Sequence record: NC_047880.1
DNA: 64,000 nucleotides
Direction: 5' to 3' (one strand)
Below the pieces are notes generated by a model. It had not been told where the DNA came from and did not search any database. It saw nothing but the letters and a program-made list of their open reading frames with translations. Shown piece by piece: positions 38,422 to 55,353 of this stretch (position 1 is its first letter; every line of letters starts with the position of its first letter). Both the position numbers and the translations under genes were made by a program.

Positions 38422-39720
38422 ATGTTATTCGATATCCGTAAGAACTTACTCATGGTTCGTGTTGTTATGGGCGGCCAGCCTGTGTACAACTTCTACAATG
38501 CGTGTGGTCGTGAGTATCAACTCACTGGCCTAGTGTGGAAAGAAATTGTAGAGCGCCAGTTCTCTGGTAGTCTGAACGTACAAACTGCGTGGGGTCAAAG
38601 CGTCCGCATTGATCGTCAGACTTTCATCTTCGACGAATCGGGTGACATGTTGATTCGCCTGTATGTAGGTCCGTACGGTTCAATTGATGTACCTGTCGCT
38701 GATGTGACTAACGGCGATTCTATCTTCAACGTGATTGACGGTGTGTGCATTGAAGACTCAATGCGTGGTGATATCCGCGCCCACCTGCGGGCAACAAACA
38801 GACCTGTTGAAAACATTGTCTGGTATCATGATATGTCTGATACTGAGCTGCGTATTGTTCTCAAGAGCTTCGGGCAAGGTCCGATGCGTATCGACAAAGC
38901 TGACACAGAAGGTCTGCATAAGATCTGGGAAACGTTTATCGAACGTCACGATGACGTGTACAAATACACGCACAGAGCAATCGGTATTGAAGACGATGAA
39001 AAGATTCCTGCTGATCTGCGCCCTGAAAGTCTGCGCCCGATTTCAAAACGTTCTATGGCTCCGAATAAAACCGTTGAGCTGATGAACGTTGCTCTATTTG
39101 ACATACTCAAAGTCATGGCCATTATTCCTGTAGATGCGGAGAATGGACTTGATCGCCAGCAGTTGCATGACATTGTTTTCGAGTGGTACAAGTCGCTTGA
39201 AGATGATCGCCTGCCTACGTACTTGAGAAACCCTCAGTTCACTGTCAATTTCATCTACGGTATGTTGCCCGACTATGATTGGAAAACAATCAATGACGAG
39301 ACAGAAGACTATCAACAATCTCTCGTCCGCGCTGCGCTTATCGAGCTGGAAAAAGAATTCGAATTAAATCCACGCCCAGAATTGAAGCAGACTGGTGCGT
39401 GTAAGCTTCCTGAGCTGAGGCTTCTCTCTGATGTGAAGTGGGCTATAGTGCGCCGCGTCTTACGCACTATTGAGACACGTTGTGCTTTGGGTCATGACGT
39501 ACTTCGTATCGGCATCCCAGACGTTCTCAAACTTCTTGAGCAAGATGATGTATTGTCCTCGCTGCACAAAAGCCAGCTTGTGACTCTTGCTAGTGCTTTA
39601 AGCCACTTTGAAGCAGCAAAACAAAATACAGAATACCTGAAAGAACTAATTACATATGCGGCGCTGAACATAGAACGTCTTTCAGATGAAGCCGACGAAG
39701 AGGAAGAAGAAGACGAGTAA
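38422..39720 (+). CDS. hypothetical protein
   Basis: AGGAG SD, 432 aa, acidic C-terminus. Confidence 0.85.
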   Translation: MLFDIRKNLLMVRVVMGGQPVYNFYNACGREYQLTGLVWKEIVERQFSGSLNVQTAWGQSVRIDRQTFIFDESGDMLIRLYVGPYGSIDVPVADVTNGDSIFNVIDGVCIEDSMRGDIRAHLRATNRPVENIVWYHDMSDTELRIVLKSFGQGPMRIDKADTEGLHKIWETFIERHDDVYKYTHRAIGIEDDEKIPADLRPESLRPISKRSMAPNKTVELMNVALFDILKVMAIIPVDAENGLDRQQLHDIVFEWYKSLEDDRLPTYLRNPQFTVNFIYGMLPDYDWKTINDETEDYQQSLVRAALIELEKEFELNPRPELKQTGACKLPELRLLSDVKWAIVRRVLRTIETRCALGHDVLRIGIPDVLKLLEQDDVLSSLHKSQLVTLASALSHFEAAKQNTEYLKELITYAALNIERLSDEADEEEEEDE

Positions 39721-42708: not shown

Positions 42709-44247
42709 ATGGCTATCGAAACTAACACAAATCTGGTTGGCAAAACTATCGTTCTGTTGGACGGCACTAAAACTAAAATCACTGATGCAATCGCGTCTGG
42801 TTATAAAGTGAAAAGCCGCACAGCCCGCGTATCAACTCGTTGTGTAGTTAAAGACGGCGCTCACTTCCGTGAAATCGAGCGCATGAACATGAGCCAGTTA
42901 GAAGATACAGGCGAAGGTTACGTGAAAGTGAAAGACGCGAAAGCGACCAAGTCTGCTAAAACCGCGAAAGCTGAAAAGCCAGCTAAGACCGCGAAGACAA
43001 CCAAAGCAGATAAGAAACCTGCTAAGCCGTCTAAGAAAGACGAACCTGCTCCGAAAGTTCGCAGCAAGAAAGAAAAAGAAGCGAAGCAACAAGAAGATTA
43101 CTTGAGCCTCGCAACTGCGATCATTAAAGGCGGCAAGAAAGTTGCGCCTGTCGAAATCGAAGCAACCGACGCTGAACTGACAGACGCGATTGCAAAACGT
43201 CTGGTCGATGTTCTCGAAAATACCGAAATCGCCCGTGTAGCTGCTGACAACAAAACGCCGATCGCAAACGCAATCGCAATCACGTACGGCGCTGAGTTCG
43301 CCGAAGAAGCTAACGTGCTTCAAATCACGCTGAACCTGCAATACGCTAAGCCTGTAGTATCAGCGCCTGAGCCTGAGCTGGATGAAGCTGTTGCTCGTCG
43401 TGCTGCTAAACTCGCCGCTAAGAAAGTGGGCAAAGTGCTGGCGAAAGCGATCAAAACTGCATTCGACCTCGAAGATGCAAACGACCTGCTGCCTGGTACC
43501 GTGTTGCTCAAAGCAGAAGAAGAGTTTATCTTCTGCGGCGAAAGCGCGAAACATGCAGGCAAAGCGCTGCTGTACAAAACAGCCGACGATAAGTTTGCGT
43601 CTGTCGCTGCTGATGCTCTGACTGAATACGAAATTGTTCAGGAAGAAGCTGAGGCCGAAGAAGAGGAAGAGGAAGAGGAAGCTGATGAAGACCTCGATGA
43701 CTCTGACGCTTATTCATACATCGCCGTTGATAAAGACCAGCTCGCACTCGTTAACAAGAAAGTGACTGCTAAGTATCACGCTGCAACCGCTGAACGTTTC
43801 GGCGTTAGCGAAGAAGCTCTGGTCCCTGGCCTTGTCGTTACAGACGGCGACACAACGTTTGCTTATCTGGGCTTCGATAGCAAAGGCGGTATGCTCGTCA
43901 TTGACAATGAAGCCGAAGATCAAGATGTTCTGTGCTACTCAAAAGCAGACATTAAATCTCTGGTAGACTTCTCGCCAGTAGTTGGCGAAGCGGACGAAGC
44001 TGATTCTGACGACGAAGAAGACCTCGACGACGAAGAAGAAGCTGCTGATGACGAAGAGGAAGAGGAAGCAGACGACGAAGAAGAAGCTGATGATGACTTC
44101 GACTTCGGCTCTGATATCCCGTCAGAAGATCTTGAAGACCTGACCGCTGATGAACTGCGTGACCGTGTTGTTCACTTAGGTCTGTCTACCCAGAAGAAAG
44201 CAGATCGCATGGACGAAGACGAACTCCGCGCACTGCTGACTGAATAA
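42709..44247 (+). CDS. multi-domain protein with a K/A/P-rich linker and poly-D/E tracts
   Basis: SD hairpin AATACT-GAGG-AGTATT; 512 aa. Confidence 0.9.
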   Translation: MAIETNTNLVGKTIVLLDGTKTKITDAIASGYKVKSRTARVSTRCVVKDGAHFREIERMNMSQLEDTGEGYVKVKDAKATKSAKTAKAEKPAKTAKTTKADKKPAKPSKKDEPAPKVRSKKEKEAKQQEDYLSLATAIIKGGKKVAPVEIEATDAELTDAIAKRLVDVLENTEIARVAADNKTPIANAIAITYGAEFAEEANVLQITLNLQYAKPVVSAPEPELDEAVARRAAKLAAKKVGKVLAKAIKTAFDLEDANDLLPGTVLLKAEEEFIFCGESAKHAGKALLYKTADDKFASVAADALTEYEIVQEEAEAEEEEEEEEADEDLDDSDAYSYIAVDKDQLALVNKKVTAKYHAATAERFGVSEEALVPGLVVTDGDTTFAYLGFDSKGGMLVIDNEAEDQDVLCYSKADIKSLVDFSPVVGEADEADSDDEEDLDDEEEAADDEEEEEADDEEEADDDFDFGSDIPSEDLEDLTADELRDRVVHLGLSTQKKADRMDEDELRALLTE

Positions 44248-44332
44248 GCTGTACTCACTGTAAACTGATATGATAGCGGTCTATGAAGGCCGCTATACTT
44301 TGACTAATCGCGCTGATTGAGGAATCACAACT

Positions 44333-45568
44333 ATGTCAACTTCAAACAAAATGTTATTGAACGCCCGTGTACGTCGTCTTGATGGTACTGTTACTCACAT
44401 CAACAAGATCAACACTAACGGTTATAGCACTGATGCCAAGGGGCCTCAGATACCTGTTAAGCGTCTCGTTCTTGCAGGCAAATCTTTGAAAGAGATTGAA
44501 GCGCCGTTCGCAAAAGACGAGTGCATCATCTCACAAGGCGTTACAGTCAAACTGAACAAACGCCAGCAACGTGAACTCGCAGATAAAACGCTTGATGAAA
44601 AAGCGTTGCGTCCTGACTTCGGTAGCTTGGTGTTTATCGACCCTGACACAGGCAAAGCGACTGACGGCAAGAAAGTGAAAGTGAAAGCTGGTGCGAAAGA
44701 AAGTCTGAAAGAAACGCGCAAGCATAACAAAGAGCCGAAAGTTAAGAAAGCAGAGAAAGTTTCTGCCAAGAACGATCTGAAAGATTCACTCGACCTGATT
44801 GACGAACGTAAGGCGCCTAAGTCTGCGCTCGTTGAAATGCTCACTGCTACACTCGAAGGCGATACGACGAAAGAACAGCGTAAGCAATTCGCTGATGCGT
44901 TTGGTATCGACTGGAAAGCTGCTAAGAAGCTCGGCGGCAAGGGTATCGTTAAGCAACTCGGACGTAAAGCTGCGCAAGCTGCTGCTGACAAGCTGAATGC
45001 TACTGTGACCTCTGATGCGTTCATTAAGCAGATGCCTCCTGAGTTGAAGCGTCTGATGCGTGAAGGTTCGCTGACCCTGAACAAAACACAGATTGAGCGT
45101 GTACTGTCTGCGCTTGGTCTTGATACGAAGTTCTATGCTATCGCAATGCAGAACTTCCTGGGTAATCTGACACTGGCTATCAAGCCTGAAGAAGTGAAGA
45201 CTACGCAGAAGAAAAAGAAAGCTGCACGTCCGCAGTATGCGACTGATAAAGACGCGAAGCGCCGTGTAAAGAAGATGACAATAAAGCTGTTGGCGCCTGA
45301 TGCGAAAGGTATGAAGACTGCTAAGGCTCACCTGAAACAGGCGAAAGCAATCTTAGCCTCTAAGCTGGGTATCGCTACAAAAGATATTAAACGCGGTCTG
45401 ATTGTGTATCACAAGAACGGCGTTGATTACATGTTCGTGGCCTGTGATGTACGCGGTCCGATCTTCATCGACAAAGATGGTGACCCGGCAGTGTATACTT
45501 ACGCGAACCTGCAAGACACGTTCGACTTCACACTGACGCCAACCTCTGAGCTGGACGCCGCTGTATGA
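44333..45568 (+). CDS. Lys-rich protein, probable paralog of the 42709 protein
   Basis: SD hairpin TGATT-GAGG-AATCA; N- and C-terminal segments resemble those of the 42709 protein. Confidence 0.88.
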   Translation: MSTSNKMLLNARVRRLDGTVTHINKINTNGYSTDAKGPQIPVKRLVLAGKSLKEIEAPFAKDECIISQGVTVKLNKRQQRELADKTLDEKALRPDFGSLVFIDPDTGKATDGKKVKVKAGAKESLKETRKHNKEPKVKKAEKVSAKNDLKDSLDLIDERKAPKSALVEMLTATLEGDTTKEQRKQFADAFGIDWKAAKKLGGKGIVKQLGRKAAQAAADKLNATVTSDAFIKQMPPELKRLMREGSLTLNKTQIERVLSALGLDTKFYAIAMQNFLGNLTLAIKPEEVKTTQKKKKAARPQYATDKDAKRRVKKMTIKLLAPDAKGMKTAKAHLKQAKAILASKLGIATKDIKRGLIVYHKNGVDYMFVACDVRGPIFIDKDGDPAVYTYANLQDTFDFTLTPTSELDAAV

Positions 45569-45954
45569 AAACATCTGAAATAGTTATGACAGGTGTATTT
45601 GCTCAACTGTATGCGCGGCTAGTAATGGCCGCCATCAATAAAGTTCACATCTACTACATGGACTTAGCGCCTGTAGTGTTCGGTGTGCAATTCAGTAAGA
45701 TGGATAACTCGCAAGTAGAAGCTGTCTGGCAGATGCTGCGTATGTCCATGCAAATGGATATGCAACACAATAGACCGCCGCTCGCTGCGCTGTTTGTCAG
45801 TCGCGCTTCTGAGTTAAAGAAACCTGGCCGCTCATTCTTCAATGAGTATGAGAAGATTACAGGAATTAAGCTCTCCTACGAAGACTGGCAGAAGCTCGTT
45901 GAAGAAGTATGGGCGCATTATTCAATGCAAGATTTCGTTGGAGAGCAATCATGA
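45565..45954 (+). CDS. small putative DNA-binding protein (PPLxALxV...PGxxF family)
   Basis: RPPLAALFVSRASELKKPGRSFF motif; ATGA overlap. Confidence 0.55.
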   Translation: MKTSEIVMTGVFAQLYARLVMAAINKVHIYYMDLAPVVFGVQFSKMDNSQVEAVWQMLRMSMQMDMQHNRPPLAALFVSRASELKKPGRSFFNEYEKITGIKLSYEDWQKLVEEVWAHYSMQDFVGEQS

Positions 45955-46430
45955 AAAAGTTAAAAATCAAATCGTCAATCAGTCGCGGTGGTTACAAGCC
46001 GAAGTCTGATGACGAAGCCCGCAAGCTGGTAGTTGAGTTTATTCTCGGTACTATCGGTACTGCACCAACTGTTCTGAGCCAGACGTTAGTTCTGAACGTT
46101 GCGAACTACAACTGGCTGACGTCAATACCTGATACTGCTAAGCCTACGCAATCGAATCAATCAGTGTTGCATAAAACTGTAAAAGAACTTAATGAGTTCT
46201 GTCGATTGAACAAATTTCCACTGGGCTTACTAATTATGCCCCACACATCATCGAGTGACTATAGCGGTGATGAAGTGATAGCAATCCCGTGGAAACATGT
46301 TGCGGCGAATTCACAAAGTCAGTCCGCTGTTAATTCGATTTTCGAAACAGTGATCGCTGATGGATATCCGCAGTTCGTAGCCGATGCAAAAACTTTGCAC
46401 GTAGACGTAGAGGGTAGCGATGTTTTATGA
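45951..46430 (+). CDS. hypothetical protein
   Basis: GGAG SD, ATG at 45951. Confidence 0.75.
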   Translation: MKKLKIKSSISRGGYKPKSDDEARKLVVEFILGTIGTAPTVLSQTLVLNVANYNWLTSIPDTAKPTQSNQSVLHKTVKELNEFCRLNKFPLGLLIMPHTSSSDYSGDEVIAIPWKHVAANSQSQSAVNSIFETVIADGYPQFVADAKTLHVDVEGSDVL

Positions 46431-47700
46431 TCACGTATTCACGCATGACGAGCGGCAGGCGTTGCTGCTCCTTGCTGAATCATTCTTTCTGGTAAAAACT
46501 GAATGTCCCGACTATCTCAAAAAGTCTAAGCACTCGATTGAGATTCGACACACGATTAATCATCGTGGGAAAGAACGCCGGTCGGGTCACATTGTAACGT
46601 CATTCGTTCCGCGTATTCACATGAGCGTTATTCAGCGTCTTGTTCGTGTGATTCGTGACGACTACGATATCCGCGCAGCACATCACCTGAGCAAGTTGTT
46701 TGAACTCGGACTCGGCGTGCCGAAGCAACGTGACATTGCACTTTACCTGAGTGACTACTCAAAAGAAGCTGATCCGAAAGGTGTGGGTATGAAGTATATC
46801 CGCAAGCTGATTAATGAGTATCACCGCAAGTATCGTCGCAGCATGGCAGGTAGTCGCTGGATTATGCCAGCCGCGTATACTGCGAACATGATGCACATGC
46901 AGTCTTTCATTCACTTGAAAGAGAACGGTTATGCGAAGCAACTCAAAGTGCCTGATGGAATACCTGTGGTTCTCGTGTACAACAACACGAACCATGAGCG
47001 TTCTGAGTTTACTTTGTGTGACGCATTCATGATAAGCCCGCTGGGCTTCCCTGTACCGTTCGCGCAGATTGCATTACGTCCTGAATTCAAAGCTGTGCCG
47101 AAAACGTTTTGCTCGAAAGCACTTCGCGGTCGTGGTATGTACAGCATGGTGATGGGTGTTGTTCATTGGTCTGATACTGATTCTGTGAAGCACTTCCGCG
47201 AACTGATGGAAATTGATGCTGATAGCTATCTGTCATTGCTTGATAGTGAACAGTACATGGACCGACGTTCGCCTGAGTATCAAGCGCTGTGCGACAAGCG
47301 CGCCGAGTATAACGAACAACGTGTAGAGATGAATGAAGTCCTCGCTAAGTTCGGAACTACGAAGCGTATTCTTAAACCCGAGCAGCAGGCTAAGTTAGAC
47401 CGTGCTCTCAAGTTCTTCGCAGACCGTAAAGACTTCCTCAAGGAGTTTGATCAGTTTGAGAAGAAAGAACAGCACAAGGCAGCGAAGCAATTCGCAGTAG
47501 CCAGTGCGCAGTTCGCAGCAATTGACTGTGGTACTATCATGGACCGCACAACGTATATGGCGGTCAGTACGACACTCGATAAAGTTCACCACATTCTTGG
47601 GAAGTGGGGATTTACTACTGTCGATACTGTTAATGCTAGTTTGAAACACTCACTCATGACTTACGGCGAATCAAAAGCAACTCGTCGCTGGTCACTATAA
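46420..47700 (+). CDS. hypothetical protein with one Sel1-like repeat and a coiled coil
   Basis: AAHHLSKLFELGLGVPKQRDIALY resembles the Sel1 consensus. Confidence 0.7.
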   Translation: MFYDHVFTHDERQALLLLAESFFLVKTECPDYLKKSKHSIEIRHTINHRGKERRSGHIVTSFVPRIHMSVIQRLVRVIRDDYDIRAAHHLSKLFELGLGVPKQRDIALYLSDYSKEADPKGVGMKYIRKLINEYHRKYRRSMAGSRWIMPAAYTANMMHMQSFIHLKENGYAKQLKVPDGIPVVLVYNNTNHERSEFTLCDAFMISPLGFPVPFAQIALRPEFKAVPKTFCSKALRGRGMYSMVMGVVHWSDTDSVKHFRELMEIDADSYLSLLDSEQYMDRRSPEYQALCDKRAEYNEQRVEMNEVLAKFGTTKRILKPEQQAKLDRALKFFADRKDFLKEFDQFEKKEQHKAAKQFAVASAQFAAIDCGTIMDRTTYMAVSTTLDKVHHILGKWGFTTVDTVNASLKHSLMTYGESKATRRWSL

Positions 47701-47722
47701 CCTTTATCTGAGGAGATATGTA

Positions 47723-50700
47723 ATGTCTGATAACAACGAAAACTTGGGCGCATCAAGCCGCTTCGGCACAGAGTTACAACAACAAGTGACGAACGAACAA
47801 CGTCGCGCTAACTCTGCTGAAAGTGGTACCGTACATCGCAGCACTATCGTGGTGCTGACTACCCTGAACTCGAACGAAAAATATTCGTACATGTCTGCCG
47901 ACGAGCAACTGCACGAAAAGCCTATCATCGGTAAAATCATCGACCGTCTGCCTGCGCTGATCGAACGTGCATCAGGTCCGTCTGCTGATAAGAACAGCGC
48001 GTACTATCTGCTGCATCCGAACAACGGTGTACCGACCAGCATTGATGAACGTGTTAAGTTCGGCGACTCATTTGCTGCTATCGTTTCATATACTGTAAAT
48101 AAAGCAGTATCAGAGATGCACGGTACGCTGTCGCTTGCGCTGTTTGCTGCTGTGGATTCTTCTGACTTGTCAGACTTAGCTGCTGAGTTCGGTATCCACG
48201 CAATCGCAATCGTGCCTGCTGATAATAGCGGTGTGTTCATCAAAGCACTGACTGAACAACTCGAAGCGCTGCAATCTGTAAACGTACTGAGCATTGACGA
48301 CACTGATGGTACTCTGGACCGCGAAGTGATCGACTACGCTGCTCTGCCCGGCAATCCAGTAACTGTGGTATCTGGTGCTGTGCGTACTTTCATTACGCAA
48401 TCTATCGGTGGCGAAGTCATCGCTGCAATCCCAAATAACGGAGAGTTCAACGTGAAACAAAACACAATCAATCCTGCGCCAGTCGATCTTGAAGAAGACT
48501 TCGATAATGAAGACGAAGTTGAAGATCAGCAGGAAGACGGTGAAGAAAGTCCTGCGTCTGGTGCCGAGCTGTTCGGCTTCAAGTCAGAAACCCTGACCAC
48601 TGAACAGATGACCGAAGCTCTGGAAGCTGTCGGTTATGATTGTACCGAATTCGCAGAAGATGAACTGCGTGTATCGTTCGAAACCGAACAGGCGTTGTAT
48701 CTGTCTAAAGAAGACGCTGCGGAAGAAGAGTCTGATGAAGAAGAATCAGACGACGAAGAAGAAGCGGAAGAAGAATTCGATCCGTGCGCTTCTCTCGCTC
48801 AACTGCTGGCTGAAGAATCTTTCGACCGTCGCGCTCTGAAAGTCCTGGTACTGTCACAAGAACTGAAAGTGTTCAAGTCTGACACCGAAGAAACTCTGGT
48901 AGCGAAGCTGCTGGAAAACGTCGAAGATGCAACGCAGCAAGAGCTGTTTGAGCTGGTATCAACGTTCGTTGAACTGCTGGGTGAACGTGAAATCGAATGC
49001 CCTGCGCTGACTGCCGCGATCTCGTCTGACGACGAAGACACATCAGGTGATGATTCTGACGACGAAGAAGAGTCAGAAGAAGAGGAAGACGAAGATGAAG
49101 ATGAAGAATCAGAAGATGATTCCGAAGAAGCGCCTGTCTCTGACCTGACCTCTGTAACTGATCCGCTCGACTACTTCCAGTTTGCTGGTGGTGAACTCGA
49201 ACATCATCATCGTCTGGCCGCTGTTGAAGCGATGGGCGAAAACGTTGAAGGCCTGAACATCATTCAGGTAATGAAAGCGTTCAACCGCATTCAGCAACAA
49301 ACCAACGCAATCGAAATCACCGGCCTGTCCGTCAACGCCGATGTAGACGATGCAGAAGACGCGGGTCTGGAAGATCAGATTCGTGCGATTCTCGAAGCGA
49401 ACGAAAGCGGTGATGACGACGACACTGCAATCGAAGATCTGTGGACGCTGCTTGATTGTGCATCTGATGATCAAGACGCTACCATGATTGACGATATCGT
49501 TGCGTCTGGTACCGAAGAGCGTCACGCTACCGCTCTGCAATCTGCTGCTGAAACCTACGGCGTGGACATTTCTGAAATGTCTTACGAAGAAGGTCTGCTA
49601 GCATTCCTGGCCGAGTTCTTCTCTGAGGGTGATGCAGAAGAAGAATCCGAAGAAGAGTCGGACGATGAAGAAGCGGAAGAAGTTGATGACCGTGAAGGTT
49701 ACGAAGCTGACACTGCTGAAAACGCATCGAGCCTGCTGTTCCTGAAAGATATCGACAAGTCAAACCCAATCGGTCCGATGCTGTCTGTTGATATGGCGCA
49801 AGCGCTGATCATCAACTTCACGCTGACTGATGGCCGCACTTACACTGATATCGAAGCTGAACTGAACGATGTTAACGATGTTAACTATCGCATTCCGTTC
49901 AACGTAGGCGCTGCTGATAAAGCTGCCGGTTCTATGCACGTACCTGCCGGTATCATCGTTGATGTTATTCAACGCGCAGGGACCAGCCGCTTCTTAGCTG
50001 ATCCGAAAACGTTCGACGTTGGTTCATGGGCTGAAAGTCTGGAACAAACTCTCGACGCTGAGATTCAGAACTCTATCTACGAAGGCCGCATTCCTGATGG
50101 CGCTGACCCGCAGGAAGCTGGTGTTGTAGTCGGTGACTTCATCGACGAAGACGAGCTGGAAGAAGCTGCCGAGCTGGGTATTGACCCAAGTCAGTTTGAC
50201 GAAATGGGTACTGGTGATCATCTGCCGATTGCAAGCCTGTACAACGCACACACTCGCGTCCGTCCGGTTAACGATGGTGATAACTACATCGTCGCTCACA
50301 CCACTGTGTTGAACGTTGCACTGCCGGGCTTCTGGGGAGCTGAGTCTGCTGAGATTGTTGGCCGCATGATTCAAGCTGCTGTCAATCGCGTTATCAGTAG
50401 CATCGCAGATCGCACCGACGTTAAAGTCTACGCTGCGTTCACTCTGGAAGCTGCTGCTCTGCTGAACAATAGCAACCTGTTCGCTGCTATGTCTGTGTTG
50501 CGTGACATGGAGCGTGTACAAGCGTACTCTGCGGCTGACGCCGCTGCGTTCACCGAAACTGATGACGTGATCGAAACTGCATCTGCTCTGGATGATCGTG
50601 ACCTGCCGTTCACTGTCCTGACTTCTGGCATTGCACAAGCAACGTTCGAAAACGGCGGTGACCTGACTGTTCTGGTGCCATGCTTCGAAGAAGAAGCTGA

Positions 50701-50740
50701 GTACGAAGACGAAGCCGAAGACGACGGCGACGACGAATAA
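47723..50740 (+). CDS. very large, highly acidic protein (1005 aa)
   Basis: SD hairpin TATCT-GAGG-AGATA; repeated poly-D/E linkers between short helical modules. Confidence 0.92.
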   Translation: MSDNNENLGASSRFGTELQQQVTNEQRRANSAESGTVHRSTIVVLTTLNSNEKYSYMSADEQLHEKPIIGKIIDRLPALIERASGPSADKNSAYYLLHPNNGVPTSIDERVKFGDSFAAIVSYTVNKAVSEMHGTLSLALFAAVDSSDLSDLAAEFGIHAIAIVPADNSGVFIKALTEQLEALQSVNVLSIDDTDGTLDREVIDYAALPGNPVTVVSGAVRTFITQSIGGEVIAAIPNNGEFNVKQNTINPAPVDLEEDFDNEDEVEDQQEDGEESPASGAELFGFKSETLTTEQMTEALEAVGYDCTEFAEDELRVSFETEQALYLSKEDAAEEESDEEESDDEEEAEEEFDPCASLAQLLAEESFDRRALKVLVLSQELKVFKSDTEETLVAKLLENVEDATQQELFELVSTFVELLGEREIECPALTAAISSDDEDTSGDDSDDEEESEEEEDEDEDEESEDDSEEAPVSDLTSVTDPLDYFQFAGGELEHHHRLAAVEAMGENVEGLNIIQVMKAFNRIQQQTNAIEITGLSVNADVDDAEDAGLEDQIRAILEANESGDDDDTAIEDLWTLLDCASDDQDATMIDDIVASGTEERHATALQSAAETYGVDISEMSYEEGLLAFLAEFFSEGDAEEESEEESDDEEAEEVDDREGYEADTAENASSLLFLKDIDKSNPIGPMLSVDMAQALIINFTLTDGRTYTDIEAELNDVNDVNYRIPFNVGAADKAAGSMHVPAGIIVDVIQRAGTSRFLADPKTFDVGSWAESLEQTLDAEIQNSIYEGRIPDGADPQEAGVVVGDFIDEDELEEAAELGIDPSQFDEMGTGDHLPIASLYNAHTRVRPVNDGDNYIVAHTTVLNVALPGFWGAESAEIVGRMIQAAVNRVISSIADRTDVKVYAAFTLEAAALLNNSNLFAAMSVLRDMERVQAYSAADAAAFTETDDVIETASALDDRDLPFTVLTSGIAQATFENGGDLTVLVPCFEEEAEYEDEAEDDGDDE

Positions 50741-50752
50741 GCACAAGCCTGC

Positions 50753-50780
50753 AAGCGGCTCTTCGGGGCCGCTTCTCTTT
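50753..50780 (+). terminator. intrinsic terminator
   Basis: AAGCGGCTC-TTCG-GGGCCGCTT followed by CTCTTT. Confidence 0.85.
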
Positions 50781-50795
50781 GAAGGAAATGTGTAA

Positions 50796-51644
50796 ATGTC
50801 AGAAGCAAAGCAAGACAGTATTGACCACGGTGCAAAGCTCGCTGAATTGATTGGCAAGCAAAGCGCAGACTACGACAAGCTGCATTACAGCTATGTTGAA
50901 GTACGTGGCAAGAACATGGACTTGGAAGAAGAACTCGCCGAGTCCACCCGCCGTGAAACGAAGCTGCGCCTCGAAGCACGTAACACGCAGCGTCTTAACC
51001 GCGACCATGCGATTCGCCTCGAACGTATCATCGAGCAAGAACGTGGTGATAAGGTTGATGCGCAAAACGAAAATGCTCGTCTGCTTGTTCAGATCGATAA
51101 GCTGAATGAAACTGTAAAACAGAAGCATGTAGAGCAAGCGTCTGTTGTTCTGCAAATGATAATGTCAGAATCTGTCAGGCAGTTCGGTAATGTTGTTCAA
51201 GCTGTCTCGCACATGTTCGTCAATCGTCGTAAGTCAAAAGCCGACGCAGCCATGCAATCAACATTGCTGATGGACTATGTGACTAAACAGCCTTCACTGT
51301 ATCGCACTGTTGCGCAGTATTACAACTCAATCAATCTGCCTGTACCAACCGCAGCCGCGTTGAAGTTGCAAATGATTGAGCACGTTAAACAGAACGCGCA
51401 TCTGTATCTCAAAGACCCTGATATTCAAGCCTATCGTGAAGCATTGATTATCATGGTTACGCAACCGACTTCGCAAGTTAATCGCAGCCGCGTTATGACC
51501 AGTGTGCGTGATGGTTTCGACTACATCAATGTTTTCGATGCTGGGTTCGACGTAGCTATTCTGTCGGACAATACTTCGTGGGCAGCAACACTGTCTGACT
51601 CGCTGTTAGATATTTCGGGTCATCTTATCAGCGCGAATTTTTAA
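50796..51644 (+). CDS. coiled-coil protein
   Basis: Heptad-rich N-terminal half; AAGGA SD. Confidence 0.8.
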   Translation: MSEAKQDSIDHGAKLAELIGKQSADYDKLHYSYVEVRGKNMDLEEELAESTRRETKLRLEARNTQRLNRDHAIRLERIIEQERGDKVDAQNENARLLVQIDKLNETVKQKHVEQASVVLQMIMSESVRQFGNVVQAVSHMFVNRRKSKADAAMQSTLLMDYVTKQPSLYRTVAQYYNSINLPVPTAAALKLQMIEHVKQNAHLYLKDPDIQAYREALIIMVTQPTSQVNRSRVMTSVRDGFDYINVFDAGFDVAILSDNTSWAATLSDSLLDISGHLISANF

Positions 51645-51739
51645 TCTGTAAAAAATATTCGTAAAGTAATCTGTAAACACTAATTGAAGTTCACACTGAG
51701 CAACTCGCTCAACCGCATAAATCTGGAGCATTAAAGAAA

Positions 51740-52300
51740 ATGGCAAAAGCTACTAAAGGTACTAATCTGGTTCCGACCATTGTTTCCCGTATCGCAAAGA
51801 AAGCTGGTTCTATCGGAACTACCAAAGTTAAGCCAACTGATCTGCCGCACGACATTCTGATTGAAAGCGTTCACGCTTCTGAAATCGTCGGTTTCATCAC
51901 AGACCGTTCTGCTACCAGCGTAACGATTCGTCACAAACGTGGCCACGGTTCTTCTGCTCAAATCGTTTCTACTTTCGGTCCTGGTCAACTGCTGACTGTT
52001 CTGGGTGAAGCCGGTTCTCACGGTCAAGTCCGTGCAATCGTGACTGCGCCAGTGTGTGAGCTGAAAGGTTACACTGTTAAATTCGACGGCGCAATCATCA
52101 TCGCCACCTCAATCGAAACTGGCGAAGTGATTAACGTTAACACCAACCTGCCGGGCTACACTGTTCGCGCTACTGTTAACGAAAACGCTGCTGCTAAAAA
52201 GTACGGCACTGCTGCGCCAGTTAAAAACAAAAAAGTTGAAAAGTCTGACAAAGCCGGTAAATCTGCGAAAGCGATTAAAGGCGGCAAAGTAAAAAAGTAA
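51740..52300 (+). CDS. beta-rich protein with Lys-rich tail
   Basis: GGAG SD, downstream of tandem CTGTAAA motifs; ends KNKKVEKSDKAGKSAKAIKGGKVKK. Confidence 0.85.
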   Translation: MAKATKGTNLVPTIVSRIAKKAGSIGTTKVKPTDLPHDILIESVHASEIVGFITDRSATSVTIRHKRGHGSSAQIVSTFGPGQLLTVLGEAGSHGQVRAIVTAPVCELKGYTVKFDGAIIIATSIETGEVINVNTNLPGYTVRATVNENAAAKKYGTAAPVKNKKVEKSDKAGKSAKAIKGGKVKK

Positions 52301-52452
52301 CGGCGTCTGACGAAGACTTTTAATAGTCTCTGACGAATCTGTAAAGAATGATTATGCAGCAACATAAAAAATGTGTTGCTGCCGAATACAAACGAATCTG
52401 TAAATCTTAATTGAAGCAATAACGCTTCTCGAACTCAAAGGAAATTCGTATC

Positions 52453-53232
52453 ATGGCTAAAGCTAAATCCGCAAACGCAGCAACTCTGGTTCTGGCATCT
52501 ATCTTCGGTGTTGTTGTTGAGAACGCTTCGAACGAAGAGATTCAAAAGCTGCTGGCAGACGCGGGTCTGACTGTATCCGGTGGTAAAGTTGTTAAAGGCA
52601 AAGCTGCTAAAGCTGAAAAGCCTGCTGCTAAAGGTAAAGGCAAGAAAGCTAAAGCGCCGACCGTTGCTGAAATCGTTGCAGCGGTGAAGGAAGAAGAAGA
52701 ACTGGACATCTCTGCTGTGAGCGAAGATGATCTGCGCGCCGCAGTTGTGAAAGCTAAACTGGCCGCTGCCAAGAAAGCAAAAGCGCTGGACGAAGACGAT
52801 CTGCGCGAACTGCTGAACGAAGCAATGGGCGTCGAGTCAGAGGATGACGAAGACGACGAAGAAGAGGACGACGAAGAAGAAGAGGACGAAGACGACTCTG
52901 ACGACGAAGACGAAGACGACTCTGATGAAGAGGACGACGAAGACGACGAAGAAGAGGATGAAGACGACGAGGAAGAAGAAGAGGACGAAGACGACGAAGA
53001 CGAAGACGAGGACGAAGATGAACTCGACCTTGATTCGCTCGACGAAGACGAACTCCTGGCCCTCGTGATCGAACACAAGCTGGCGCCTAAGGCGAAAGCT
53101 AAGAAAATGGACGAAGACGAACTGCGCGAATTGTGCGAAGGTCACTTCGGCGGTGATGACGAAGAAGAAGAGGACGAAGACGACGAAGACGAAGACTTCG
53201 ACGATGAAGACGAAGACGAAGACGACGAATAA
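52453..53232 (+). CDS. acidic protein with poly-D/E tracts and two copies of a ~40-aa helical module
   Basis: About 60 consecutive residues almost all D/E between the modules; AAGGA SD. Confidence 0.9.
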   Translation: MAKAKSANAATLVLASIFGVVVENASNEEIQKLLADAGLTVSGGKVVKGKAAKAEKPAAKGKGKKAKAPTVAEIVAAVKEEEELDISAVSEDDLRAAVVKAKLAAAKKAKALDEDDLRELLNEAMGVESEDDEDDEEEDDEEEEDEDDSDDEDEDDSDEEDDEDDEEEDEDDEEEEEDEDDEDEDEDEDELDLDSLDEDELLALVIEHKLAPKAKAKKMDEDELRELCEGHFGGDDEEEEDEDDEDEDFDDEDEDEDDE

Positions 53233-53446
53233 GTCCTGACTCCCGGTCGCTGCCCTTCAAAGTAGAGATGCTTGCGAAGGGCTAATATTCGAAACTTCTT
53301 CTCGAATATTTTAGTAAAATGTTTTAAGTTTCCTGTACATCGTATGCTGATTATAGTAATGTACGAGTACAGGGAATTACCTGAATTGAATTTTGTATTT
53401 CATCCCGCGACAATACTCGCACAAAACAAATTGAACGGAGTTTATC
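53233..53446 (+). other. highly structured intergenic/leader region (four hairpins)
   Basis: Inverted repeats at 53252-58/53276-82, 53284-92/53302-10, 53329-38/53367-76 and 53391-96/53421-26. Confidence 0.55.
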
Positions 53447-54010
53447 ATGAGCAACAAAAAAATCATCAGCGGTCTGAACAAAAACCTGAAAGCCATCGCC
53501 AAATCTGAGCAGGCGCTGTCTAAGACCGTCGCGTCTACTTCTAAAGAAATCGAAAACCTGGGCGCACAACGTGCTGGTATCGAAGCGCAGATCGCAGAAC
53601 TGAGCGGCGCCGCTGCTGCACCGGTTAAAGCGGGCAAAGCTGCTAAAGTTGCCAAAGCTGAAAAGCCAGCTAAAGCAACCAAAGCTGACAAGAAAGCCGC
53701 GAAAGCTGAAAAGGCCGCTAAGCCTGCTAAAGCAGATAAGAAAGCTGCTAAAGCTGAGAAAGCCGCCAAGCCTGCTAAAGCAGACAAGAAAGCCGCCAAA
53801 GCTGAAAAGCCTGCTAAAGCAACCAAAGCAGATAAGAAAGCTGCTAAAGCTGAAAAACCTGCCAAGGCCGGTAAAGCTGCTAAAGCAGAAAAGCCGGGCA
53901 AAGCTGATAAAAAAGCTGGCAAGAAAGTGAAAGCTGAAAAGCCTGCTAAAGCCGGTAAGAAAAGCAAGAAAGCTTCCGAGTCCGAAGACTTCGACTTCGA
54001 CATGGAATAA
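53447..54010 (+). CDS. histone H1-like (AlgP/Hc2-type) K/A/P-repeat protein
   Basis: N-terminal coiled coil, then tandem KAEKPAKATKADKKAA / KAEKAAKPAKADKKAA units, then a short acidic C-terminus. Confidence 0.8.
   Translation: MSNKKIISGLNKNLKAIAKSEQALSKTVASTSKEIENLGAQRAGIEAQIAELSGAAAAPVKAGKAAKVAKAEKPAKATKADKKAAKAEKAAKPAKADKKAAKAEKAAKPAKADKKAAKAEKPAKATKADKKAAKAEKPAKAGKAAKAEKPGKADKKAGKKVKAEKPAKAGKKSKKASESEDFDFDME
53636..53960 (+). repeat. ~48-nt (16-aa) imperfect tandem coding repeat
   Basis: AAAGCTGAAAAGCC...AAAGCAGATAAGAAAGCTGCT units repeated about 5-6 times. Confidence 0.85.
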
Positions 54011-54041
54011 AAAGTAATCGCTGAGGCGGTTGCTTAAATTT

Positions 54042-54074
54042 AAGAGGGCAGCGCTGACGGGCGTTTGCCCTCTT
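54042..54074 (+). terminator. terminator-like hairpin
   Basis: AAGAGGGCAG-CGC-TGACGG-GCG-TTTGCCCTCTT; weak U tract. Confidence 0.6.
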
Positions 54075-54110
54075 GTCGTATCTAGCACAATTTTTTTGAA
54101 GGAAGTTCAA

Positions 54111-54608
54111 ATGACATCCGATGAACTTAACAAACATGAAGCAGGCGTTATGTCTCGGCTCGATGCGATTCCAAAGGCATCGGCACCACAAAAGAAACCT
54201 TCTTACTTCGAACTCGTATCACTCCGCATCGAAGCGTCTGGCCGTCTGGCTCGCGCTCTCTTCACTCTGCATTCTGCAAACGTTATCAGCATGAACTTAG
54301 CGCATGACTCGGCCGAGCAGGAAGCTCTGACAGTTGCTGAAAAGCACTGGGCTGATATCTGCAACGGCCTTGTGCCTGTACAAGACGGCACAGGTACAGT
54401 CAAGCTACGCGCTGATCTTCCTGCATGTATCGAAGCGTTTCGCATCGTCGTTATGGAATGCGCTCAACGTGCTGCACTCGATAAAGAATGCAGAGAGAAG
54501 ATGGCTCATGGCGAAGGCTTTAAGCTGCTGACTCAATCCACTCAACTCTCCCTTCCTGTTAAACATACCTGCAATGAGGACTGCGATCATGGCACAGAAG
54601 CTATCTGA
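54111..54608 (+). CDS. hypothetical protein
   Basis: SD in the loop of TTGAA-GGAAG-TTCAA, ATG at 54111. Confidence 0.75.
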   Translation: MTSDELNKHEAGVMSRLDAIPKASAPQKKPSYFELVSLRIEASGRLARALFTLHSANVISMNLAHDSAEQEALTVAEKHWADICNGLVPVQDGTGTVKLRADLPACIEAFRIVVMECAQRAALDKECREKMAHGEGFKLLTQSTQLSLPVKHTCNEDCDHGTEAI

Positions 54609-55353
54609 GCAAATCAACCGTTACTTCAATCTCATGGAATCAATCCGTAAGCAACTGTTTCGTGTTATGCCTATCTCTAACCGTTACTTGTGCATCGTGA
54701 GTTTCAGTACGCAGTATCAAGCGGTCATGAGCGATCTGGTGAGCAAAGAAAGTCTGCTGCCTGTTAAGCTGCTTGATGGTCTGACGGGTTCTGAGCTTGT
54801 TGCTTACGGCACAATCATGCAGGCAATCGAACAGTGGGTTGCTTCTGGTATGCAAGAGGATTTCCCTCTCGACCAGCGTCAGGATGTTTATTCCGAGTAT
54901 CGTCGTCTTACTACAGACGCAGAGCAGGAATCAACTGAACCTCAAGTCGCAGTGGTTCGTGCTGATACTCATACACGCGCGGCTATCTTACGCATGTCAT
55001 TCGCCTCGCTCGTTGAAGCTGCATCCGACCTTGGTATCTGCCACGATGTTCAGACGAAAGATCTCAAACACAAAGATCTGCAAGCTGCCGTTCTTAAACA
55101 CTTAGGCATGGCTCAGCCTGATGCGGAAGAACGTGATGCACAGGATATCGACAATATCAAAACAACGATTCTGTCTGCTACCGATGATGAACTCCGTGTT
55201 ATGTGTGCTGAGGCTCATGTAGTCGCTCGTAAAGAACTGCGCCTTGTCGGTCGTGACGAGATGATCAGCCTGATGTTCATCCACCATGACATTGAAGAAG
55301 AAGACGATGACTGCGGATGTGGCGAACTAAGCTGCATCTGTCACGCTCGCTAA
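54589..55353 (+). CDS. hypothetical protein with two short helical modules and a Cys-rich tail
   Basis: GAGG SD, ATG at 54589; ends DCGCGELSCICHAR. Confidence 0.8.
   Translation: MAQKLSEQINRYFNLMESIRKQLFRVMPISNRYLCIVSFSTQYQAVMSDLVSKESLLPVKLLDGLTGSELVAYGTIMQAIEQWVASGMQEDFPLDQRQDVYSEYRRLTTDAEQESTEPQVAVVRADTHTRAAILRMSFASLVEAASDLGICHDVQTKDLKHKDLQAAVLKHLGMAQPDAEERDAQDIDNIKTTILSATDDELRVMCAEAHVVARKELRLVGRDEMISLMFIHHDIEEEDDDCGCGELSCICHAR

Follow-up and report, generated by a model that had tools for sequence, protein, structure and literature searches.

The acidic proteins encoded near the end of the genome of Erwinia phage vB_EamM_Y3 raise the question of whether a short segment that seems to recur in several of them is a genuine domain and, if so, what fold it adopts and what it might do. 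The window analysed here, a stretch of 64,000 nucleotides from sequence record NC_047880.1, matches the last 64 kb of Y3 (Sasquatchvirus Y3, a jumbo phage of 261,365 bp) with 100% identity by megablast, and base 1 of the window is base 197,366 of the Y3 record; positions below are those of the window unless another locus is named. The genes gp315, gp320, gp323, gp324 and gp326 are annotated as 'hypothetical protein' throughout in that record, and our search of the literature found no paper on these genes, the papers naming Y3 being concerned with taxonomy and morphology. An original prediction, made from the letters of the sequence, held that a module of about 40 residues is repeated across several of the acidic proteins and matches the fold shared by SAP, LEM and Rho-N domains. 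We found that the module is clear in gp315 and gp323 and degenerate in gp326, while a segment of gp320 and a second segment of gp326 fall outside it; the fold is most likely of the HeH kind, and a docking function is the reading that we favour.

Three copies, one in gp315 and two in gp323, carry this result (Table 1). They align with one another over their whole length without a gap, with Smith-Waterman scores of 78-100 compared with 25-27 +/- 5 for shuffled sequences (z 11-14), and none of 2000 composition-preserving shuffles reached the scores of the true copies. Furthermore, a profile hidden Markov model (HMM) built from these three copies and another built from the 53 copies of the wider family described below both recovered exactly these three sites among the 4419 six-frame open reading frames (ORFs) of the whole Y3 genome, and beyond them no ORF scored below E = 4. 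The translations originally quoted for 44125-44244, 52702-52821 and 53023-53139 are exact, and the proposal that these segments align significantly with one another is borne out by both approaches. When copies of the gp315 type and of the gp323 type were compared as separate profiles, they matched with a probability of 98.5% (E 2e-15), and the PHROG families of the two proteins match each other precisely at the module.

Table 1. Genes, module copies and related segments discussed in the text, in window coordinates.
Feature	Position	Strand	Description
gp315	42709..44247	+	512 residues; small N-terminal domain, Lys-rich stretch, two acidic tracts, terminal module copy 1
Module copy 1	44125..44244	+	C-terminal 40 residues of gp315; 'GL(S/T)T' type; HMM E 4e-16
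gp320	47723..50740	+	1005 residues; poly-acidic
gp320 segment	48815..48916	+	Kept among orthologues; not a demonstrable member
gp323	52453..53232	+	259 residues; phrog_30618; alignment of 11 homologues
Module copy 2	52702..52821	+	gp323 residues 84-123; HMM E 3e-16
Poly-Asp/Glu linker between gp323 modules	52837..53022	+	pLDDT about 50, predicted disordered; low-complexity DNA repeats
Module copy 3	53023..53142	+	gp323 residues 191-230; HMM E 8e-19
gp324	53447..54010	+	Lys/Ala-rich, H1-like
gp326	54589..55353	+	ORF
Degenerate module copy in gp326	54994..55092	+	Inside the earlier 54985-55104; family-level profile match
Second gp326 segment	55168..55284	+	Likeness to the module over helix 1 only; not a demonstrable member

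At the DNA level the three copies share 54-60% identity, falling to 40-47% at third codon positions; the duplication is therefore old and the likeness is kept up by the protein sequence. Against the four orthologues of Dickeya phage AD1, Erwinia phages Alexandra and Yoloswag and Yersinia phage fHe-Yen9-02, the ratio of non-synonymous to synonymous substitution rates (dN/dS) came to about 0.1-0.25 in the two copies of gp323 and to 0.3-0.4 in that of gp315, values to be read with dS near saturation. The positions of the modules are unchanged in these four phages, and in all of their gp315 orthologues the module stands at the C-terminal end. Judged from these alignments and ratios, the three strong copies are homologous and under purifying selection. 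We also observed that the C-terminal copy in the gp315 orthologue of fHe-Yen9-02 (L008, 3460-4992) is nearer to the second gp323 copy than to the other gp315 copies, a likeness that hints at exchange between module copies.

Word-based searches returned orthologues only, and tblastn of the phage collection placed the module in 51 records of the Y3 clade. When 1.84 billion cluster representatives were searched exhaustively by HMMER with a 17-copy profile, 22 proteins scored E <= 1e-3, and about 20 further phage protein clusters were found to carry 1-4 copies each, nearly always on poly-Asp/Glu linkers and often with an adjacent Lys-rich stretch. In distant gp323-like proteins a small helical region at the N-terminus leads through a Lys/Gly linker to two modules with acidic runs between them, as in gp323 itself; among the distant gp315-like proteins the module always forms the C-terminus, and one of them has a second copy inside the chain. 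Other carriers differ in the number and placing of copies, with three in the acidic C-terminal tail of protein P0020, four in the tail of P0022 and a single N-terminal one in P0033. One candidate, the eukaryote-like protein P0029 (816 residues, six matches), was excluded as a member, since only a 'GLST.KKA..DEL' core matches and the repeat is a different one; it is made of about eight tandem repeats of ~34 residues ('..ESV.TD.LSTAKKAG.NDELADEPVKIRND..').

The resulting family alignment holds 53 distinct copies over 40 columns with one single-residue insertion. No family of Pfam or NCBIfam and no named PHROG family covers the module, whether whole proteins or pieces were searched, and by its profile the module is a sequence family of its own, absent from Pfam and NCBIfam and represented in unnamed PHROG families only; gp315 itself belongs to phrog_33433, of unknown function. 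Single copies also come and go within otherwise related proteins. Y3 gp308 (38422-39720) and protein P0035 of an AD1-like phage contig (L013, 8001-9539) are 43% identical over 320 residues (E 1e-85); P0035 has an inserted module copy at residues 352-391 and Y3 gp308 lacks it, so the module was gained or lost between these orthologues. A divergent variant, with the connector '..IIKPEAA.KL..', was seen in AD1 gp311 (50 residues; L006, 2191-2343; HMM E 6e-4) and at the C-terminus of Alexandra gp324 (L007, 1720-2448; HMM E 0.02), and no Y3 counterpart of it was found; AD1 gp311 is also among the BFVD structural matches reported below.

Next, we examined which columns are conserved across the 53 copies. 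The constant features are a hydrophobic core (columns 3, 6, 11, 15/16, 20, 29, 34 and 37/38) and a basic Lys25-Ala26 pair in the connector, rather than particular acidic positions, and the connector is as well conserved as the helices. The spacing between Leu20 and Leu34 is 14 residues in 53 of 53 copies. Charge is segregated along the module, columns 1-10 and 31-41 being acidic and columns 22-30 basic. The three strong Y3 copies combine the hydrophobic columns and Lys25-Ala26 with a full-length, in-register HMM match. The composition of the Asp/Glu runs beside them does not account for their likeness, the conserved columns being hydrophobic ones and Lys25-Ala26.

What fold might such a module adopt? 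From an input alignment of 17 sequences, shallow and made of close relatives, AlphaFold2 (AF2) predicted the isolated module with a local confidence score (pLDDT) of 87 as two helices (residues 8-17 and 31-39) joined by a 13-residue connector that holds a short helical turn (23-28). The two modules retain the same form in the model of full-length gp323 (pLDDT 83-91), with helices at 91-100, 106-109 and 114-124 for copy 2 and at 198-207, 213-217 and 221-232 for copy 3, and the acidic tracts fall to about 50. The AF2 prediction thus has the hallmarks of an HeH unit, which are two helices of about 10 residues, an extended connector and a total length of 35-45 residues, and the two helices with a long connector that the original prediction had described are what the models return.

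Fold comparison points the same way. Among the top 50 Foldseek matches in BFVD, 14 have a functional name, and 11 of these 14 are Rho-N or HeH/LEM proteins (10 labelled Rho-N, one HeH/LEM); these 11 superpose with template modelling (TM) scores of 0.65-0.79 and root-mean-square deviations of 1.2-2.6 A over 36-40 columns, at E 0.75-2.5. In the PDB the best match has E = 2.6, and the list includes a chain of 3'hExo, a protein that we take to carry a SAP domain (TM 0.67), and Rho (TM 0.61), both at E 8.5-9.7; these E-values are weak because the query has only 40 residues, too short for significance. Foldseek with the whole gp323 model gave TM of about 0.1, which is meaningless.

By sequence, the 53 copies gave matches to Pfam families that all stay below the gathering scores: seven to SAP, seven to DUF6472, three to LEM, two to Ish1 and one each to Rho_N and HeH. 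The best score to SAP (PF02037, threshold 23.9 bits) was 20.5 bits, in protein P0032, and the gp315 copy reached 16.1 bits (E 0.009). One of the 53 copies matched Rho_N (PF07498, threshold 24.9 bits) with E 0.017, three matched LEM (PF03020, threshold 24 bits) with 9-12 bits, and one matched HeH (PF12949) with E 0.055. The expected likeness to SAP, LEM and Rho-N therefore stands at the level of predicted fold and fails at that of family membership, every curated threshold having been missed, although SAP is the joint most frequent of the sub-threshold matches. The 17- and 53-copy profiles, run against the sequences of all PDB chains, returned chance-level matches only, none of them HeH-related (HigA3; the helix-two-turn-helix of Nei at E 1; Nudix-type proteins at E 0.001-0.004 over 31 columns).

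The weaker copies proposed in gp326 and gp320 were exact as translated in gp326 (55168-55284 and 54985-55104), and they fared differently as members. The Y3 segment at 54985-55104 taken alone gave pairwise z of -0.8 to 1.7 and no HMM match. When the module profile was set by hhalign against aligned orthologues from eight gene families nearby, gp326 was the sole scorer (P 8e-5), and with 16 gp326 homologues taken from the protein database the match rose to P 2.3e-5 and a probability of 76%, in register. One homologue, P0046, matches the module HMM at the same position with E 1.3e-6. The gp326 family therefore carries the module there, the Y3 version being the most degenerate, and at the family level this segment is a degenerate member. 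The segment at 55168-55284 had no module HMM match and reached only P 0.014 for Y3 alone and P 0.0084 over 20 columns for the family; the C-terminal segments of 15 gp326 homologues likewise gave no HeH-type Pfam match. The gp320 segment had no module HMM match either, and its hhalign comparison gave P 0.18 with the alignment lying elsewhere in the protein, so that the proposal of module copies in gp320 does not hold. With two clear carriers and one degenerate one, the earlier 'several of the acidic proteins' says too much for Y3. We did observe that gp320 residues ~290-400 (48590-48920) contain two segments kept in five orthologues and flanked by acidic runs ('LT.EQ..EAL.A.GYD...' and 'DR..LK.LV...LKV.K.DT.ETL.AKL'), whose hydrophobic spacing is helix-turn-helix-like; by sequence they are unrelated to the module.

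Next, we considered where the carriers are encoded. In the Y3 clade they lie among plus-strand genes of replication and topology type and not among the minus-strand virion genes. Outside it, P0022 (L011, 8001-9320) directly follows genes for PolA, a PDDEXK nuclease and an AAA_24 (Sak4) ATPase, and its homologue gp42 of Pseudomonas phage PMBT14 (L017, 3971-4978) follows genes for a Cas4-like exonuclease and a Sak4-like annealing protein. These two proteins have an N-terminal domain of ~120 residues in common (44% identity, E 3e-25), and the middle of PMBT14 gp42 contains two other HeH-like repeats in place of the four modules of P0022. Protein P0023 lies between PolA and RecA-like/clamp-loader genes on a 137-kb contig. 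Two further ideas were discarded: PMBT14 gp42 as a bridge to Rho_N, for which the scores were only 10-11 bits, and the N-terminal domains of P0020 and P0022 as single-stranded DNA-binding proteins (SSBs), for which there was no PDB or Pfam match and the phage homologues are all 'hypothetical'.

From the fold class, the neighbourhoods and the established roles of SAP, Rho-N and LEM domains elsewhere, we infer a binding role. Under this hypothesis the module would be an autonomous mini-domain of ~40 residues with two amphipathic helices, both acidic; the 13 residues that connect them are basic and make a single helical turn near a Lys-Ala pair that is almost invariant. One to four such modules are strung along a protein on Asp/Glu-rich linkers predicted to be disordered, different host proteins having acquired and lost them, and each would act as a small docking unit on a flexible acidic tether. 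The basic connector may contact nucleic acid or a DNA-bound partner, and docking could thereby bring the carrier to phage DNA, or keep it there, while that DNA is replicated or recombined or its topology is managed. A SAP-like/HeH docking mini-domain that works through its basic connector is, taken as a whole, the best explanation that we can offer and one that we hold to be rather probable.

Several observations weigh against this explanation. At E < 0.001 the fold searches gave no named HeH protein, and the best viral fold match (E 0.018) is most likely the orthologue of the module protein itself. None of the HeH families of Pfam reached its gathering score with any of the 53 copies, and the profile compared by hhalign with 81 gammaproteobacterial Rho sequences gave P 0.069 and a probability of 0.8%, with a lone alignment in register on Rho HeH residues 5-33. 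The connector exceeds by about 3-5 residues what we take to be usual for Rho-N or SAP. The short connector and conserved Gly that we presume to mark the SAP motif are likewise missing, the spacing being longer and the turn Gly before Leu20 being confined to copies of the gp315 type. The mean net charge of -4.9 per copy is unusual for a DNA-binding HeH. Finally, six other contexts of the module (L021 among them) are short, unannotated or uninformative. With neither a significant fold match to a named HeH protein nor a significant sequence match to an HeH family, HeH is therefore a predicted fold rather than a shown membership; in our reading, the greater length of the connector and the lack of the turn Gly mark the module as a separate branch. 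As a prediction, an HeH fold of the SAP/Rho-N/LEM kind is well supported and the most likely one.

The acidic character of the modules could alternatively mean that they bind a basic protein, the H1-like gp324 or the basic-tailed gp322, and not nucleic acid; gp323 and gp315 could then possibly act as chaperones or counter-ions for gp324 and gp322. The strongly acidic modules and linkers are consistent with this, as is the arrangement of gp322, gp323 and gp324, neighbouring genes with conserved synteny in each of the five phages examined, and LEM domains, which bind the protein BAF, illustrate that an HeH can have a protein for a partner. However, what is conserved in the module is its core and its basic connector and not fixed acidic positions, and the family also occurs beside PolA, Sak4 or RecA genes, where we noted no H1-like neighbour. 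Furthermore, many carriers have a Lys-rich stretch of their own, so that charge pairing could be intramolecular. We regard a basic partner as an unlikely explanation.

A similarly low probability attaches to the reading in which the segments are amphipathic helices for self-association or coiled-coil pairing and the hairpin of the AF2 monomer is over-predicted. The strong hydrophobic periodicity, the frequency of paired or tandem copies and of two-copy architectures, the shallow AF2 alignment and the weak E-values of the fold searches would all fit such helices. Single-copy carriers exist, however, namely all gp315 orthologues and P0033; the helices have just 9-12 residues; the connector is no less conserved than they are; and the model superposes at 1.2-2.6 A on named Rho-N/HeH proteins. 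That there is no domain at all, the copies being by-products of Asp/Glu/Lys-rich low complexity or of a recent, unconstrained internal DNA duplication, is scarcely credible, for although GAA/GAC-type low-complexity repeats fill the region and the copies abut acidic tracts, shuffling never reproduces the scores, the register is ungapped over copies from diverse phages, the DNA has diverged with dN/dS well below 1, and modules stay constant in length where the acidic tracts vary; a pure composition artefact is excluded.

Returning to the docking mini-domain, the setting of its Y3 carriers deserves a closer description. The block from gp315 to gp326 lies on the plus strand directly upstream of three topoisomerase II genes, and the gene order is the same in AD1, Alexandra, Yoloswag and fHe-Yen9-02. 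A scan for promoters and terminators gave no more sites than shuffled sequence. In gp323, a conserved N-terminal part of 45 residues is followed by a Lys/Gly/Ala linker, a helix, module copy 2, an Asp/Glu tract of 62 residues, module copy 3 and an acidic tail with a conserved Phe; the length of the Asp/Glu tract differs among homologues and that of the module is constant. The tail holds a conserved 'EDFDDED'. The N-terminal 45 residues (52453-52587) are kept in 11 of 11 homologues and have no Pfam match; AF2 models them, with low confidence (pLDDT 44-63), as two helices and a beta-hairpin, and the distant gp323-like proteins retain a similar short N-terminal helical part. A resemblance of this part to ribosomal stalk proteins was dropped, there being no Pfam signal and low AF2 confidence.

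Other features of the block were noted in passing. The N-terminal ~55 residues of gp315 (42709-42880) and gp316 (44333-44500) are weakly paralogous (28% identity over 53 residues, E 1e-5 by BLASTP) and are followed in both proteins by a Lys-rich stretch; they look like a shared small domain, one without a Pfam match. gp324 is made of imperfect 'AKAEKPAKA.KADKKA' units rich in Lys, Ala and Pro, which are seen in the DNA as repeat families D6, D8 and D9, and its C-terminus is an acidic tail, '..SESEDFDFDME'; a 'DFDF' motif that resembles this tail precedes the gp315 module (43987-44124).

In its boldest form, the hypothesis would make the gene cassette that precedes the topoisomerase II genes a chromatin-like kit for jumbo phage DNA, with HeH modules on acidic tethers as recruitment handles. 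Its members would be the H1-like gp324, the basic-tailed gp322 and gp316, and the poly-acidic gp315, gp323 and gp320. The modules might then be the folded-domain counterpart of the SSB tail, a new kind of recruitment handle, and could join basic DNA-coating proteins with replication, recombination or topology enzymes on phage DNA. We consider this extended picture speculative and doubtful.

Taken together, these results describe a real and clearly delimited domain family that merits description as such; its known fold is plausible, its acidic, tandem and tethered form is unusual, and as a finding it is no first-order surprise. Viruses commonly have HeH modules as small adaptors, and the present branch, found outside Pfam and NCBIfam in unnamed PHROG families, is unusual in that its helices are acidic, its basic connector is longer and its copies stand in tandem on poly-acidic tethers. 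Its definition offers an initial way into some ten conserved hypothetical genes that form a block in the Y3/Alexandra/AD1/Yoloswag jumbo phages, and it ties this block to a motif in the replication/recombination modules of unrelated phages. Should a role as recruitment handle on phage DNA be borne out, the module would offer a simple and testable entry point to genome organisation in jumbo phages that do not form a nucleus; should it be a structural spacer, the result would be routine domain annotation.

Among known systems, the SAP domain (PF02037; Ku70, SAF-A, PIAS) is similar in size (~35-40 residues), in a first helix with an L..L...EL pattern that ends in a (G)L turn, and in a second amphipathic helix. 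It differs in that the sub-threshold matches run mainly over helix 1, the module is net negative whereas SAP is basic, the turn Gly is unconserved, and the connector, which contains a helical turn, is about 5 residues longer than in what we take to be the SAP motif. Rho_N (PF07498) is the closest by fold, accounting for the 10 Rho-N-labelled BFVD matches and for Rho in the PDB list, but the loop of the module is about 3 residues longer and no OB or CSD partner domain follows it. LEM/HeH domains (PF03020, PF12949) likewise have two helices and, between them, a long connector (11-13 residues) that includes a helical turn, and the weak LEM matches fall on copies of the gp315 type; in contrast, they are eukaryotic modules of the nuclear envelope and chromatin without an acidic tandem context. 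Finally, the acidic disordered tails of SSBs (E. coli SSB, T4 gp32, T7 gp2.5) recruit replication and recombination partners and offer a functional analogy only. Phages often encode their SSB in the slot after Sak4-like and Cas4-like genes, and it is in such a slot that P0022, with its four tail modules, is found. The known tails are short terminal acidic-aromatic peptides, unlike the folded modules.

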